This document shows positions 8,502 to 62,393 of a stretch of 64,000 nucleotides of DNA, one piece after another (position 1 is the first letter of the stretch; every line of letters begins with the position of its first letter). The notes under the pieces were generated by a model, which saw nothing but the letters and a program-made list of their open reading frames with translations, was not told the DNA's origin and did not search any database. The position numbers were made by a program, and so were the translations under genes. Location of the stretch: NCBI GenBank assembly GCA_002104945.1, contig MCFH01000052.1, positions 310,001 to 374,000 on the forward strand, given 5' to 3'. The stretch is from Piromyces finnis finn. Its lineage: Eukaryota > Fungi > Neocallimastigomycota.

Positions 8502-8835
8502 CATGAACAATTTTAATTATTACATTTTTTAATTTTAATTAATTATTGTCTAATTATAAAATATTTAATTTTTATAAATTAATAATTAATATAATTATTG
8601 TAAATAGTTAATAAATTTAAAATAAAATTTTTAATAATAAAATTTTAATAATTTTAAAAATTTAATAATTTCAAATATTAGAAATTTTATACTTTGAAAT
8701 TTTTTAATAAAAATTTAAAAAATAAATTTTTTCAAATTTTCAAATTTTCAAATTTTAAAAAAATTTTTAATTTTTTCCATGTGTCCAAATTTTTTAAATT
8801 TTTATATATGTTATTGTGACAAAAATTAAAGTAAA

Positions 8836-8906
8836 GCGTTAATAGTATAGAGGTAGAATATTTGCCTTCCAAGCAAATGGCCCGGGTTCGATTCCCGGTT
8901 AACGCA
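8836..8906 (+). tRNA. tRNA-Gly(TCC)
   Basis: Acceptor GCGTTAA/TTAACGC; anticodon arm TTTGC-CTTCCAA-GCAAA; GGTTCGATT T-loop. Confidence 0.96.
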
Positions 8907-8913
8907 TTATAAT

Positions 8914-8985
8914 GCCTGTTTGGCTTAGTGGTAGAGCGTCGCTCTTGTAAAGCGAAGGTCGGTGGTTCAATTCCGTCAATAGGCA
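8914..8985 (+). tRNA. tRNA-Thr(TGT), 7 bp downstream of tRNA-Gly
   Basis: Acceptor GCCTGTT/AATAGGC; anticodon arm TCGCT-CTTGTAA-AGCGA; GGTTCAATT T-loop. Confidence 0.95.
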
Positions 8986-9298
8986 TTAATGTTAAAAAAT
9001 ATATTTTATATTTTTAAAATTTCAATGAGAAAGCGCGTTATATTAATTATATAATTTATATCATGAATGAATAAAGTTCGATTAAAAATAAATTTAAAAA
9101 TTTAAAATATTATAAAAAGCTTTTAAAAATATTTAAAAAGTTACTATAGACTTTAATAAGATAGATATTAAAAAATAAAGAAAATTAATATTCAATAAAT
9201 TAACTTTTAAAAGAAATTGTTAATATGCAGAAAAAGTTATGCTTTACGAATATTACATACCATTTTCACTTATTAAAGAACTATAGAAGGTGTTAGAT

Positions 9299-9493
9299 TA
9301 ACTTAGATTAACTTTGATGGAAAACTCAAAAATAAATTAAATATAAAATCCTGGCCAGAAGTCTGGCAGAGGTCGAATTTCTTCTGGCTAAAAAGTCTGG
9401 CTAAAATGGCCAAAAATCTAGGATTTATACTAAATCATCAATAACTTATATTTAATTTATTTTTGAGTTTCCCATCAAAGTTAATCTAAGTTA
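9299..9493. mobile_element. MITE-like fold-back element with about 48-bp terminal inverted repeats
   Basis: TAACTTAGATTAACTTTGATGGAAAACTCAAAAATAAATTAAATATAA versus its reverse complement at 9446-9493, one mismatch; TA at both ends; core with repeated TCTGGC. Confidence 0.7.
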
Positions 9494-9829
9494 TTTACTA
9501 AATTCATTATAACCAAGTTTATTTCTAAATTGAACATATTAATTAAGTTAGGTCAGAAGGTTCTAACCTTTTTACTATATAGTTAACATAAATAAATTAA
9601 AATTAAAATATATAATAAATATTTATATAATGACTTTAAGCCTATTACTTATTTTTATTTAATTGGCTTAAGTCATTTTAATTATTTGAGAGAGGAATGA
9701 CTATTTCATTTATTTAAATTTCCTTCCACATCAAATGAACAAAGATATATTATATAAACTTTAATAAACATAAAATCTCTAAAATTATTATAATATTTTA
9801 ATAAAATATTACTCTTAATTAAATGAATC

Positions 9830-57959: not shown

Positions 57960-59046
57960 ATAATGTTCAACGATGGTGATTCGTCTTGAATCAGTAGAAA
58001 ATCAGAACAATAAAGATCCAATATTTTACTTAACAGGAAAACCCATCTACTGATTGCTACACTTACCTTGGTGTTCCATTTGATAAGAATTTGTCCTTTA
58101 AACCAATTATTAAAGCTCTTAATAACAAGGTTTTGAAAGGACTTTTTTCAGTTAGTAAATTCTTAAGAAATCCTAATATTCCTATTCCTTTTAAAAAGCT
58201 AGTACTTATCTCACAATTGATCAGCAGAATTTCATACTTTTCAACAAAGCTAGGTCTAGGATTGCTCAGAAATATGTTAACAAAGGAATATGATGAGTTG
58301 CAAGAGTTTATAAAGCTGTATCGTTTGTTTCTCTATACTCTATTTCAAAAGATTTGAATATTCCTCCATTGTCAACCAAATGCGCATTAGCTCAGGTTAG
58401 ATGTTTTAACAAGTGGATACAAGTTGGATACTAGAGTTGCAAAAGCTGCCAAATTTGTTGACCCGTATTAAACATTACGATTACATAGTCCAATTATTAA
58501 ATTTTTTTCAGTCAAAGTAATTCCAACAGTCCTATCAATAATAATGAAAATGTTAATATCAGTAGAGATAGCAATAACAAAAATAACATTAGTAACATTA
58601 GTAATAATAATTGTAATAGTAGTAATAATAGAAGTAATAGCAATAGTGAAGATAATAATTCTAATTTAGATAGCTATTTAGTTAATAATAGTAATAGTTC
58701 TAATAATTGGGTGAATATTAATGTATATGATTATTCTAGTGTATACAATAAAATATTTAAATTCCTTCTTGGGGGAAGAAGTTTTAACAATATCAATTTC
58801 AATTCAAGGGAATGGAAAGAACAATATTCTTGACGGTAACAGCGGAACTTCTAACCAAAATTATGCTTTTTGTTGTTGGCCAGAAATGGTCAATGTTCAA
58901 AAAGTTTGAAGCAATAACTAAGAGCGTGAATGCTGAGGAAACAGTAAGACAAGCCAGGAGGGCCAATGCAACCAATAGAGATCATAATTTTGACCCATGA
59001 CAAAGTTTTGATCTTTTACTTGGTATCCCATTGGAAGTCAAATAAA
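57960..59046 (+). mobile_element. Degenerate non-LTR (LINE) retrotransposon 3' fragment; may extend upstream to about 57340
   Basis: YTYLGVPFDKNLSF...KLVLISQLISRISYF resembles the RT thumb region; frameshifted downstream; the 3' UTR shares motifs with the SINE-like element. Confidence 0.72.
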
Positions 59047-59397
59047 ATTATTATACTTTAGTATAATAGTGGCTTTCTTATTGTAATTACTAGAATATAT
59101 CATACTCAATTTTTATTCATTTATGCTTATTTAAACATATTTTTTTAATTTTTATTTTTTTATTTTTATTTTTTATAACATGTATTATAATTTTAATTAA
59201 ATTAATAATTAAAATGATGCTATTAAAAAAATTATATATAGGATGAAATTTCTTTATATTATTCTGTTATAATTTTCACCATAGAATCTAAATAATAATG
59301 ACTTTTAAAAAAAATAATAACTTTTATTTACTAGTCAATCTATATTCTTTCACTAAAGATTTAAAAAAATAAAATTCTTAAATATTATGATAATTTA

Positions 59398-59547
59398 TTT
59401 TTTTAACTTCCAAATGCATTTCACCCATCAATCAGAATAAGCCCCAATGGTAGTTCTTAGGGAAACGTTGTCACCTTCCTATTGCTAGGCGGTTGTGACC
59501 CTCCTGATCTTCAGCTTCGACGTTCACTTAGTCCATGTACATTAGAT
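59398..59547 (-). mobile_element. 5'-truncated copy of the SINE-like element
   Basis: Reverse complement aligns with about 29816-29980, including the GGAAGTT-A tail. Confidence 0.8.
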
Positions 59548-60039
59548 AATGGGGTTACAAACTTCAATGAAATTTTTATGATTTACTTGACTTGCCCGCT
59601 GTATTTATTGTATTTACTGCAATTATTAGCATACTACCAAAATTTGCTATTACTTTATAATAGAGATACTCCTAACACCAAACTGAACTGGCTTCAATAT
59701 TCATCTATATTATAAATAATAAAACAATTCTTTCAGTATTAGATTTAAAAATATTTTTTATTTATTTACTCAATACAAAACTTTTTTCATTCTACTTTCT
59801 TGAAAATATTATTTTTTTTTTTCATTTTATTTCATAATTTAATTTATTAAGTTGTTATACAGTTACAATTTTTTTTTTTAATTAATATTTTTATTTTATA
59901 TATAAATATATTATTATTTTTATTTTTATTATTCTTTATTTTATTATTTTATTAATAGATATTTTCATTAAAGGTAAAAAGTTAATAAATAAATATAAAA
60001 ATATTTTATTAATTTCATCTCAGGTCCAAAAAATTATTA

Positions 60040-60111
60040 AGGGGCGTTCCGGATTTGAACCGAAGACCTATTGATCTGCAGTCAATTGCTCTACCGCTGA
60101 GCTAACACCCC
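60040..60111 (-). tRNA. tRNA-Cys(GCA), identical to 23800-23871 but with different flanks
   Basis: Exact reverse complement of the first copy. Confidence 0.97.
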
Positions 60112-62393
60112 TTTTTCATTTTTTTTTGTTAAGGAACCAACAAATAATGTTATTCTTGTCATAATTAATGATTATGACCTAATCCATTCATTATTGTTCC
60201 TAAATGTATGAAAACTTTACAATATTCTTATTTGTAAATTAATGTATACACTTAAATTATATTTAAAATTATTAATAATTATTTTTTATTGAACTTAAAT
60301 TTTATTTTATTAAACTTAAAAATTAATTTAGTAATAATAATATATTGAAAATTATAGTTTATTGAACTTTTAGTTTAATTTATCAAGTTAATGAATTTTT
60401 ATTAATTAAAATTATGAATAATATTTCTGTAAAATAGTAAAATTTTTTTAGTTAAATATATTTAAAGTAAACTTTTAATGTATGTTAATCAATTTAATAA
60501 TATGTATAAATATTTATTATAATAGTAATGTAATTTTATTATTCATTTAAAAGTAATTTAAATACTAAAATTATGTAAATAATTAAAGACTAATTCTTTT
60601 AATTAACACTACTTAATTTTTTACAAAAAGTATAAAAAGGTGTATATTATAAGAATTAGAGAATATACAGATATTTTTATTTTTATTTTTATTTTATTTT
60701 ATAATTTTATATTAATATCTTAATAAAACAATTTTATTAATAAAACAATTTTTCTTATTTCATTTTAATATTATTTTTGAGTATTAATAAATTTATTAAT
60801 ATTTTATAAATAAAAGTAAATTCCTCGAACCGTAACATAAAAATTGGTGGAGATATCGGGGAATAATATTAATAAAAATTATTAATACATAGGATAAAGT
60901 AATATTAAAATATTACTAAAATATTATATAAATTTCTTAAAAATTTATTACCCTTCAAAGTTATAGGTAATATTTATATTACTGTTGAAGCTTTAAGGTA
61001 TAATATTTTAGTAGAACTGAATTAGTACGCTTTAGAAGCAGTACTTATTTAGGAATTAGTGGTTAAGTTTTTAGGTCTAGTTTATCTTTCACAGTAGGAT
61101 ACTGGAAAGCGCTGAACCTTTCTATTTTGCTAGAGAAATAGAAGTGCCTCGCATAATTGCTACATGACACTGGTAATACGGTAAGCTGGGCAATTGTGAA
61201 CTACTTAAGCACCCTAAATAAGTATTGGAAAATTGCTGTGAAATGCTGTTCTACTATACTTATTATTGTAATTCAAATTTTTAATAAATTAAATATTATT
61301 TTAGTATTTATAATTTTTTTAAAAAAAAAAAAAAAAATATTTTTTTTTTTTAATTGAACGATTTTTAAAAATTATTCTTTTTAAAATATAAATAAATAAT
61401 TCGAAAGTGACCCTTAGCGTGGCAAGTTAAACTGCTGTACGTAATACTTTGGTGTTCAATTATATCTGATAATTGGGGAAGATAATCAATTATTTTCTTT
61501 CCGCTAATTAAGTTAGTGATAATAAAGAAATTAATTACGTTACTTCCTTTTATTAAATTATATTTAATATTAACCATCGGGTATATTTGTGGCTTATCAT
61601 CAAAGAGCTACGAGGGATTTTCACTTAGAATTACACAACCTATAATACTTGATGGTTTAACATTATATAGGTTGGCCTATATTTTTATAAAAAGAAATAA
61701 GTTTTTAAATAATAATTAATTAAAAAAAAAAAAAAAAAAAAAAAAAAAAAAAAAAAAATATAGATATATATATCTATTCTTTTTGTTGATTCTCTTCGAG
61801 TAATTTAATATTGCTAATTGAAATATTCTTTTCTTACTGTTTTAAGTTAAACAAGTTATATCAGCATAGACAAGCCTTATTAACTAATCAACAGAGGTAT
61901 ACTAGGGGTGGTAGAAAGATCCTGAAGCACGTGACGGAACTTAGATCGTGTGAATAAGGTGACGGCAACATTTACCATTGGACGAAAGACTCTTAGTTAA
62001 TAGTCTATTATATATAATTTGGTCGGTAACTTGAATCAGTAATAACAATATTAAATTAAAATTCTTGCTAGTAAATTGAAAACAAATAATAATTAACTAT
62101 AAGAAAAACAGAAAACAAAAGTAATAATTTCATCTTTTCTGACTGAACTAAGATAGTAAGGAGTGATACTAAAAATTTAAATAAATAATTGGTAGTACGT
62201 GCTGTGCTAGATTATTTGTATCTCATTCTGTCAAGTGGTCGATAAAGGAATTTCGAGCTTGGTTACAACTAATAAGTGGTCGATAAAGGAATTTCGAACT
62301 TATAATTTTTTTTTTAGACTATCAAAGGTATTTTTGAGTCTATACTGTGTCATCTTGTACTGCAATAAATTCGGTCAAGGAAAATACAAGAAA

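Follow-up and report, generated by a model that had tools for sequence, protein, structure and literature searches.

Ty3/gypsy elements of two deep lineages at fixed positions upstream of tRNA genes in the anaerobic gut fungus Piromyces finnis

That gypsy elements integrate just upstream of tRNA genes has been established for S. cerevisiae, S. paradoxus, S. japonicus, C. albicans, Y. lipolytica and the dictyostelids (PMC5911963, PMC5006619), and the table of such elements in a 2018 review contains ascomycete yeasts and dictyostelids only (PMC5911963). In the case of Ty3, the integrase C-terminal domain and a vestigial chromodomain contact TBP and Brf1 of TFIIIB (PMC8632968). In the case of DGLT-A, RNase H and the integrase N-terminal domain bind Tfc4 of TFIIIC (PMC6101501), and this element is treated as convergent with Ty3 (PMC5006619, PMC6101501). 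Here we describe Ty3/gypsy elements in a 64-kb stretch of the Piromyces finnis genome (contig MCFH01000052.1, positions 310,001 to 374,000; hereafter the window), where ~51 of 64 kb (about 80%) is long terminal repeat (LTR) material stacked upstream of four tRNA loci. A sequence-only reading of the window had proposed that several Gypsy lineages integrate here at a fixed position upstream of tRNA genes, and that this had not been described in anaerobic gut fungi. A full-text literature search likewise returned no report for Neocallimastigomycota, although an empty search is no proof of absence.

ARAGORN and Rfam concordantly identified five tRNA genes in four loci (Table 1). The first nucleotide (+1) of each tRNA was checked via acceptor-stem pairing, LTR ends were taken from LTR-pair alignments, and the junctions were read directly. 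LTR families, of which self-comparison of the window revealed many, are denoted by letters. At locus 1, the J1 terminus (...GTGACA, at 8821) is separated by 14 nt (AAAATTAAAGTAAA) from +1 of tRNA-Gly. The H LTR at locus 2 terminates at 23784 (...CCTTAACA), 15 nt before +1 of tRNA-Cys, and B at locus 3 terminates at 49351 (...GTATCA), 16 nt before +1 of the initiator tRNA-Met (tRNA-iMet). At locus 4, read on the minus strand, the H' terminus at 60127 lies 15 nt from +1 of the second tRNA-Cys. The claim that an LTR terminus lies 14-16 nt upstream of +1 at four of four loci is therefore borne out (14, 15, 16 and 15 nt); the end of H is loose by 1-2 nt because its target site duplication (TSD) is not clean. 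We refer to insertions with an LTR end 13-18 nt from +1 as class 1. They fall within the narrow window of ~13-19 nt (up to 33 nt) known for integrators at genes that RNA polymerase III (Pol III) transcribes. Given 66 annotated LTR termini in 64 kb, the analytic probability of finding a terminus at 13-18 nt in every one of the four loci is ~1.5e-9, and when the 66 termini were placed at random, 0 of 200,000 trials gave more than two of the four loci with a terminus at that distance.

The TSD lengths read earlier for J1 (AAAAT, 5 bp) and B (CAAC, 4 bp) were recovered, and further clean duplications were seen for small1 (TATC) and D (TCAAC). In each instance the duplications border elements, not tRNAs, and those around J1 and B show that these two inserted into pre-existing tRNA-upstream DNA. 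Class-1 target duplications are centred at ~ -12 to -15 relative to the tRNA; their sequences differ, and the site is therefore not set by a sequence motif. Older insertions were examined by removing younger ones. With J1 and one TSD copy taken out, an A-type LTR end (2125) is 16 nt from tRNA-Gly, as had been proposed. With B taken out, the end of D (39577) is at the 18 nt given previously, or at 17 nt if D has an extra A, as the TSD TCAAC requires. With D also taken out, X3 lies at 14-17 nt depending on the choice of X LTR end, and the single value of 14 nt in the sequence-only reading becomes one end of that range. Removal of H places small1 ~13 nt from tRNA-Cys.

These insertions form dense pile-ups, in which consecutive LTRs of different families and in both orientations are only 2-10 nt apart. 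Toward the tRNA-Cys at 23800, the outer part reads A2-cta-B-type solo-ataa-E-ata-D2(inverted)-caata-A(inverted)-aataa-piece without family assignment, and continues with Y3 and the last 51 nt of an X LTR-aaga-A3-aaaa-X1-tc-small1-tatc-H-15 nt-tRNA. Toward tRNA-iMet, the order is X2-10 nt-J2(inverted, with nested Z and K)-aa-X3-tcaac-D-atcaac-B-16 nt-tRNA. Repeated insertion at one tRNA-adjacent site predicts that a spacer should equal the old distance minus the new distance plus the TSD, and this is what was observed between A1 and J1 (16-14+5 = 7) and between D and B (18-16+4 = 6). The innermost J1 and B are also the youngest, with LTR identities of 100% and 99.9%, respectively, and intact open reading frames (ORFs). 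Of the full-length elements, J1, B, small1 and H' point away from the tRNA, and A1 points as the tRNA does. Every new arrival displaces older elements outward, which leaves abutting LTR arrays with the youngest, intact elements innermost. As read from the DNA, these junctions show positioning relative to tRNA genes that is precise to the nucleotide, independent of family and of target sequence, and achieved via insertions with TSDs.

Over 139 nt the two Cys loci are 96% identical, a stretch that takes in the end of the LTR, the spacer and the tRNA. No difference is seen in the 52 nt of the LTR end or in the 72 nt of the tRNA; 5 of the 15 positions in the spacer differ, and the DNA beyond the 3' ends of the tRNAs is unrelated. 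On this comparison, the H-Cys junctions are two separate insertion events. Duplication of the H-Cys unit as a block was considered and rejected on the same differences, which are confined to the spacer and the 3' flanks.

A second site, overlooked by the sequence-only reading, lies ~65-68 nt upstream of the tRNA (class 2). Y1, Y2 and Y3 interrupt three LTRs of unrelated families (A1, H and an X LTR, respectively), at 50, 52 and 51 nt from the end that is nearer the tRNA. Before the arrival of J1, Y1 was 66 nt from +1 of tRNA-Gly, and Y2 is 67 nt from +1 of tRNA-Cys. Z and K entered J2 at identical nucleotides (J positions 51-55), 54 nt in from its tRNA-proximal end, and the class-2 target duplications are centred at ~ -63 to -65. 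Outside the window, a 17.5-kb rumen-type metagenome contig (L057) has the 5' LTR of a K-subclade element (protein P0057) 65 nt from +1 of a divergent tRNA-Val, with no LTR between. On two further metagenome contigs (L064 and L065), the same family, which belongs with K, is inserted at 49 and 50-51 nt within terminal LTRs, with the end of another LTR 4-5 nt away from theirs. The external evidence thus comprises one direct and two indirect positive cases from one family. Since no LTR intervenes on L057, the class-2 offset is counted from the tRNA, and the constant is the distance of ~65-68 nt from the tRNA rather than a distance from the LTR end. An offset of 51 nt measured from the LTR end was considered and rejected; the L057 case argues against it.

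Pfam identified Ty3/gypsy gag and pol genes in four elements of the window. J1, B and K have direct LTRs, TG...CA ends and short TSDs, and their pol domains occur in the order RVT_1, RT_RNaseH, Integrase_H2C2, rve/SH3 (Pfam), with integrase last, as is typical of Ty3/gypsy elements. Two lineages can be distinguished. Lineage I (J, K and metagenome relatives) has 5-bp TSDs and an SH3_Tf2-1 integrase C-terminal domain. Its primer-binding site (PBS) is exactly complementary to an LTR-internal site, starting from the first base after the 5' LTR, over 11 nt in J1 (8194-8204, complementary to 8452-8462), 10 nt in K and 10 nt in the L057 element; chance values for such a match are 5e-5 and 4.5e-4. 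By this signature, lineage I is Tf1-like and self-priming, with the presumed 5' end of the transcript as primer. Lineage II (B, the non-autonomous small1 and small2, A-type LTRs and H') has 4-bp TSDs and a PBS that starts TGGTGGAGA..., complementary to the 3' end of a tRNA, and a common gag is found in B, small1 and H'. The sequence-only reading had treated J, H and B as distinct types. J does differ from B and H, but H is not a third priming type, because the PBS of H' (TGGTGGAGA...) and its gag are B-like. On these features, H is a separate family within the B lineage, and J as against B/H represents two deep lineages.

A maximum likelihood tree of reverse transcriptase (RT), RNase H and integrase, built from sequences other than the Ty3, Tf1 and DGLT-A references, places lineages I and II on opposite sides of its deepest split (100/100). 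Lineage I is nested among chromodomain-bearing gut-fungal chromoviruses from the same kind of samples and divides into a J subclade (class 1) and a K subclade (K and P0057; class 2). A protein of Pecoramyces ruminantium falls into one of the K-subclade clusters, and the lineage thus extends across anaerobic fungi.

The integrase tails differ between the lineages. With E allowed up to 10, the canonical chromodomain PF00385 still had no match in J1, K or P0057, and the sister-clade protein P0071 matches it at 2e-12. The J1, K and P0057 tails can be aligned to the sister-clade chromodomain, and a few positions are invariant in this alignment. In an AlphaFold model of the J1 tail, an SH3 barrel precedes three strands and a helix, and the predicted confidence (pLDDT) is 82-94 over residues 111-170. 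The best fold match of the model in the PDB is Ty3 integrase in its complex with TFIIIB and a tRNA gene (7Q5B; E 1.4e-4; 14% identity), and superposition on isolated chromodomains gives 1.5-1.9 A. As modeled, the integrase of the chromovirus-derived lineage I ends in an SH3 domain and a degenerate chromodomain-like fold. The lineage-II integrase ends directly after SH3 and has no chromodomain. Sequence matches to Ty3 integrase are generic only (J, E 2e-21; B, E 9e-21) and do not indicate close kinship to Ty3; the B integrase scores better against foamy-virus integrase (1e-30).

The TSDs, the pile-ups, the age order of the elements, the phylogeny and one external contig support the earlier proposal of several Gypsy lineages integrating at a fixed position upstream of tRNA genes. 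The 'safe-harbour' role that the sequence-only reading attached to it is a putative, evolutionary interpretation. We consider it likely that tRNA genes act as 'landing pads', with at least two deep Ty3/gypsy lineages inserting position-specifically upstream of them at the class-1 and class-2 sites through a tether on the intasome. By analogy with Ty3 and DGLT-A, the anchor of the intasome would be the initiation complex of Pol III in its assembled state (TFIIIB and/or TFIIIC), and this complex would function as a ruler. In lineage I, the SH3 domain and degenerate chromodomain could serve this purpose. Lineage II, having no chromodomain, would have to make contact via another surface, so that its sharing of the class-1 site with lineage I is probably convergent.

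The class-1 and class-2 sites are ~51 bp apart and roughly symmetric about -38. If the Pol III start is assumed to lie ~10 nt upstream of +1, as in yeast, -38 is the expected position of TBP/TFIIIB, and class-2 elements may dock on the upstream face of the same complex. A two-sided arrangement can be imagined in which class-1 families use the downstream face (~ -13) and the sister subclade the upstream face (~ -64), in mirror image about TBP/TFIIIB, the choice being made by the degenerate chromodomain 'ruler', and in which the unrelated chromodomain-less lineage has converged on the downstream site. We put this forward tentatively and think it rather unlikely to hold in all its parts. If true, two-sided docking would amount to a natural experiment on the way in which distance and side relative to TFIIIB are encoded by integrase tails.

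Other explanations were weighed against tRNA-directed insertion. The elements might aim at existing LTR termini, the tRNA genes being incidental neighbors in an LTR-rich region. This would fit the pile junctions, which are mostly LTR-LTR with spacers of 2-10 nt, as well as the class-2 insertions, which are 49-54 nt inside an LTR end in seven of eight cases. However, the innermost LTR is always 14-16 nt from the tRNA, the LTRs that Y1, Y2 and Y3 interrupt have no sequence relationship and present no conserved feature for an integrase, and the L057 element lies at its distance from tRNA-Val with no LTR between. The spacers of 7 nt (A1/J1) and 6 nt (D/B) are also those predicted by the tRNA model, and such self-nesting is very unlikely. 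Alternatively, integration may be random or regionally biased, with selection clearing insertions elsewhere. Safe-haven arguments of this kind are usual for compact genomes (PMC5006619), and the window displays retained copies only. Selection is nevertheless unable to give nucleotide-level precision, with several families within windows of 3-5 nt and Z and K at the same nucleotides, and the very young J1, K and B had little time for purifying selection; we regard this account as highly improbable.

The stretch common to the two Cys loci could suggest that LTR-tRNA junctions were copied by segmental duplication, that a tRNA was carried in an LTR, or that tRNA genes were retroposed beside LTR ends. 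All five mismatches are inside the spacer between an identical LTR end and an identical tRNA, though, and the 3' flanks are unrelated; the remaining loci have other tRNAs and other LTR families, and the TSDs border the LTR elements. Any such copying is extremely improbable as the source of the pattern. Chance proximity might be expected in a window of which ~80% is LTR-derived, but not one of the 200,000 permutation trials reached even three of four loci, and with the analytic value of ~1.5e-9 its probability is negligible and it was rejected.

Several observations do weigh against tRNA-directed insertion. The evidence comes from one 64-kb window and one metagenome family. A tRNA is present on only 1 of ~30 metagenome contigs, most of which are circularly permuted LTR-internal assemblies without flanks, and the 3' flanks of two lineage-II elements (L060 and L062) contain no tRNA. 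H, X3 and Y3 have no clean TSD. K is now >1.8 kb from tRNA-iMet despite identical LTRs, and a tRNA-directed K requires X3, D and B all to be younger. The 2186-bp insert in H, the insert at 25588-26725 in J2, and small2 in Z (unless the relic candidate described below is counted) are outside both classes. In addition, the chromodomain-like fold is common to all chromoviruses and is thus no proof of Ty3-like docking.

Further copies were sought in the metagenome and in sequence records. The J/K-like contigs (L001-L004 and L047-L056) and the B-like contigs (L060-L062) provided no usable flanks, being mostly circularly permuted or without recognizable LTR pairs. Viral contigs scanned with the J1 and B pol sequences contained no relatives. 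A scan of metagenome DNA with a 19-mer conserved at the A-type LTR end gave 42 loci, all of them chance matches in bacterial-type sequence and none an LTR end. Exact-protein look-up of all retroelement ORFs of the window gave no matches; these P. finnis ORFs are not on record. P0139, a candidate set of independent insertions, was rejected as one conserved locus in many samples. On L057 (6348-17536) and L065, copies of the K-subclade element follow one another perfectly, head to tail (LTR-internal-LTR-internal; 100% identity between units of 5676 bp); this tandem is either a real array or an assembly artefact.

Table 1. Positions of tRNA genes, LTRs and retroelements in the window.
Feature	Position	Strand	Remarks
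A1, 3' LTR of small2-like lineage-II element past left window edge	259-775 + 2076-2125	+	Split by Y1
Y1 solo LTR (TGTAAAAG...GTGACA)	776-2075		TSD TCACT; inside A1
J1, intact lineage-I Ty3/gypsy	2133-8821	-	TSD AAAAT; 5' LTR adjoins tRNA-Gly
tRNA-Gly(TCC)	8836-8906	+	Locus 1; Rfam coordinates
tRNA-Thr(TGT)	8914-8985	+	Locus 1, tandem with Gly; Rfam coordinates
A2 LTR	to 10608		Pile of locus 2, outer part 9996-17153
B-type solo LTR	10613-11717		Pile of locus 2
E LTR	11722-12472		Pile of locus 2
D2 LTR	12476-13239	-	Pile of locus 2
A LTR	13245-13824	-	Pile of locus 2
Piece without family assignment	13830-14406		Pile of locus 2
Y3 solo LTR	14407-15434		Pile of locus 2
X LTR, last 51 nt	15435-15485		Pile of locus 2
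A3 LTR	15490-16336		Pile of locus 2
X1 LTR	16341-17153		Pile of locus 2
small1, non-autonomous lineage-II element	17156-19756	-	LTRs 99.2% identical; TSD TATC
H LTR, locus 2, three pieces	19761-20045, 22232-22604, 23733-23784	-	Broken by 2186-bp insert and Y2
Y2 solo LTR	22605-23732		TSD GTCAT; inside H
tRNA-Cys(GCA)	23800-23871	+	Locus 2
X2 LTR, outermost recognizable in tRNA-iMet pile	24672-25481		10-nt spacer, then J2
J2, J-family solo LTR in pieces	25492-25587, 26726-27154, 37778-37831	-	Hosts Z and K
Z, older composite insert in J2, start TGTAAAGTGGG	27155-31551		Holds small2 and tRNA-like relic candidate
small2, non-autonomous lineage-II element	27427-29430		TSD ATTA; inside Z
K, lineage-I element, K subclade	31557-37777	+	TSD ATATA
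X3 solo LTR	37834-38631		Class 1, upstream of tRNA-iMet, older than B
D solo LTR	38637-39577		TSD TCAAC; class 1, upstream of tRNA-iMet, older than B
B, intact lineage-II element	39584-49351	-	TSD CAAC; 5' LTR adjoins tRNA-iMet
Initiator tRNA-Met	49368-49439	+	Locus 3
tRNA-Cys(GCA)	60040-60111	-	Locus 4
H' element, past right window edge	60127-64000	+	5' LTR 60127-60836; points away from tRNA-Cys

The structures of the more complete elements are as follows. J1 has LTRs of 617 bp (2133-2749 and 8205-8821; 100% identical) and one gag-pol ORF (3240-8123). K has LTRs of 641 bp, also 100% identical, with gag, protease and RT-RNase H-integrase spread over three ORFs. The B LTRs are 1076 bp long and 99.9% identical, gag is at 45381-46604 and pol at 40672-45384, and the PBS is TGGTGGAGAATCCGGGCGTG on the element sense strand (reverse complement of 48248-48267). 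The small1 element has a B-type PBS and polypurine tract and a B-gag-like ORF (17877-19007). H at locus 4 was considered as a solo LTR and rejected; it belongs, as the 5' LTR, to an element that has a PBS (TGGTGGAGATATCGGGG, from 60845) and a B-like gag (62235-63275).

The 2186-bp insert in the locus-2 H LTR (20046-22231) is not in the H' LTR at locus 4, and LTRs and a TSD of its own are absent. It carries a 441-aa Gag-like ORF (20042-21367; Retrotrans_gag, Ty3_capsid, zf-CCHC) antisense to the LTR, with its ATG within H sequence. The insert in J2 (25588-26725) is ~1.1 kb long and lies ~96 nt from the tRNA-distal end of J2. Directly left of X2, positions 24640-24671 read GATTCTCCGGTTCGAAGGACCAT, which resembles the lineage-II PBS in reverse complement (GGATTCTCCACCA) with 10 nt inserted; instead of being a solo LTR, X2 may be what is left of a truncated element on the minus strand, as its 5' LTR. 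The Y LTR contains a 14-nt minisatellite that differs in copy number between Y1 (1028-1369) and Y2 (22827-22976), and A-type LTRs have long (AAT)n runs near their 5' ends (e.g., 10050-10110 and 15520-15800).

A candidate tRNA-like relic is located at 29431-29520, with a B-box match (GGTTCGACCCC, 29497-29507) after an anticodon-arm-like hairpin. This B-box is the sole match outside real tRNAs, with 0.14 matches expected by chance per window. If +1 of the candidate is placed at ~29448, the small2 LTR end (29430) is 17 nt upstream and may represent a fifth class-1 case. Neither Rfam (E up to 1) nor relaxed ARAGORN called a tRNA at 29448-29520.

Outside its coding regions the window has a G+C content of ~20%. 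The only clear host gene is the ORF at 54910-56829, which is 100% identical to Piromyces finnis BCR36DRAFT_415535 and so identifies the source as this species. At locus 1, tRNA-Gly and tRNA-Thr (8836-8985) share a strand and are separated by just 7 nt, an arrangement suggestive of a dicistronic Pol III unit; retroelements can reach this pair only from upstream of its first gene. Downstream of tRNA-Thr, in DNA that is otherwise unique, a 48-nt inverted repeat (9299-9346 and 9446-9493; 98% identity) surrounds ~100 nt and looks like a miniature inverted-repeat transposable element or a hairpin. A ~170-nt repeat with an A-rich tail (88-92% identity) is found in Z (29812-29985) and on the minus strand at 59390-59547, ~500 nt downstream of the tRNA-Cys at 60040. 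It could be the 3' part of a short interspersed nuclear element or a non-LTR element.

Position-specific integration at Pol III genes is a textbook case of targeting, which has so far rested on ascomycete yeasts and dictyostelid amoebae. The Piromyces elements extend it to an early-diverging fungal phylum with a very AT-rich, repeat-rich genome, and the use of such sites by two deep gypsy lineages at once widens the case for convergent evolution. Sister subclades at -14 and ~ -65 offer paired natural variants for the integrase features that set distance and side relative to TFIIIB or TFIIIC. On the practical side, tRNA loci are expected hotspots of assembly and annotation trouble in anaerobic fungal genomes, and Piromyces integrases could give ideas for site-specific insertion tools where the organism is difficult to engineer.

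Among known systems, Ty3 integrates 1-4 bp upstream of the Pol III start, ~15 nt before the mature tRNA, via contacts between integrase and TFIIIB. The Piromyces elements are likewise of the Ty3/gypsy type, with LTR ends ~14-18 nt from +1 and the tRNA gene left intact. Lineage I alone further resembles Ty3 in its 5-bp TSD and in an SH3 and vestigial chromodomain tail, for which Ty3 is the best fold match. The differences are considerable. Sequence kinship is distant (integrase E ~1e-21; 14% identity in the fold alignment). Ty3 is primed by initiator tRNA-Met, whereas lineage I self-primes, and lineage II has a 4-bp TSD and no chromodomain. A site at ~ -65 is not a Ty3 feature in vivo. DGLT-A, which can face either way, inserts upstream of tRNA genes at 13-33 bp (mean 15), the same distance class, and shares with the Piromyces set the lack of a canonical chromodomain and the presence of several related families at the same site. 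Its host, in contrast, is amoebozoan, and it targets through RNase H and the integrase N-terminal domain to Tfc4.

Tj1 (S. japonicus), Tyl3, Ylt1 and Tyl6 (Yarrowia lipolytica), and beta and Tca8 (Candida albicans) are all from Ascomycota, whereas the Piromyces set is in Neocallimastigomycota, with two deep lineages together and far larger pile-ups. The class-2 site has analogues in TRE5-A (Dictyostelium, ~44-54 bp upstream) and NLTR-B (Polysphondylium, 39-64 bp upstream), which also use a discrete site beyond the TFIIIB footprint. These are non-LTR (L1-type) elements that use target-primed reverse transcription, whereas the elements of class 2 here are LTR retrotransposons that insert at ~65 nt with TSDs of 5 bp. 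The dictyostelid Skipper-2 is, like lineage I, a chromovirus with a diverged chromodomain that has become associated with tRNA genes, but it sits downstream of them. In Tf1/sushi elements, the PBS is complementary to the element's own transcript at its 5' end. J, K and the L057 element carry this signature, although Tf1 targets RNA polymerase II promoters. Class 1 is therefore a new occurrence of a known behavior, and what is new is that two deep lineages take part, that the pile-ups are very large, and that LTR elements use a precise site at ~ -65.

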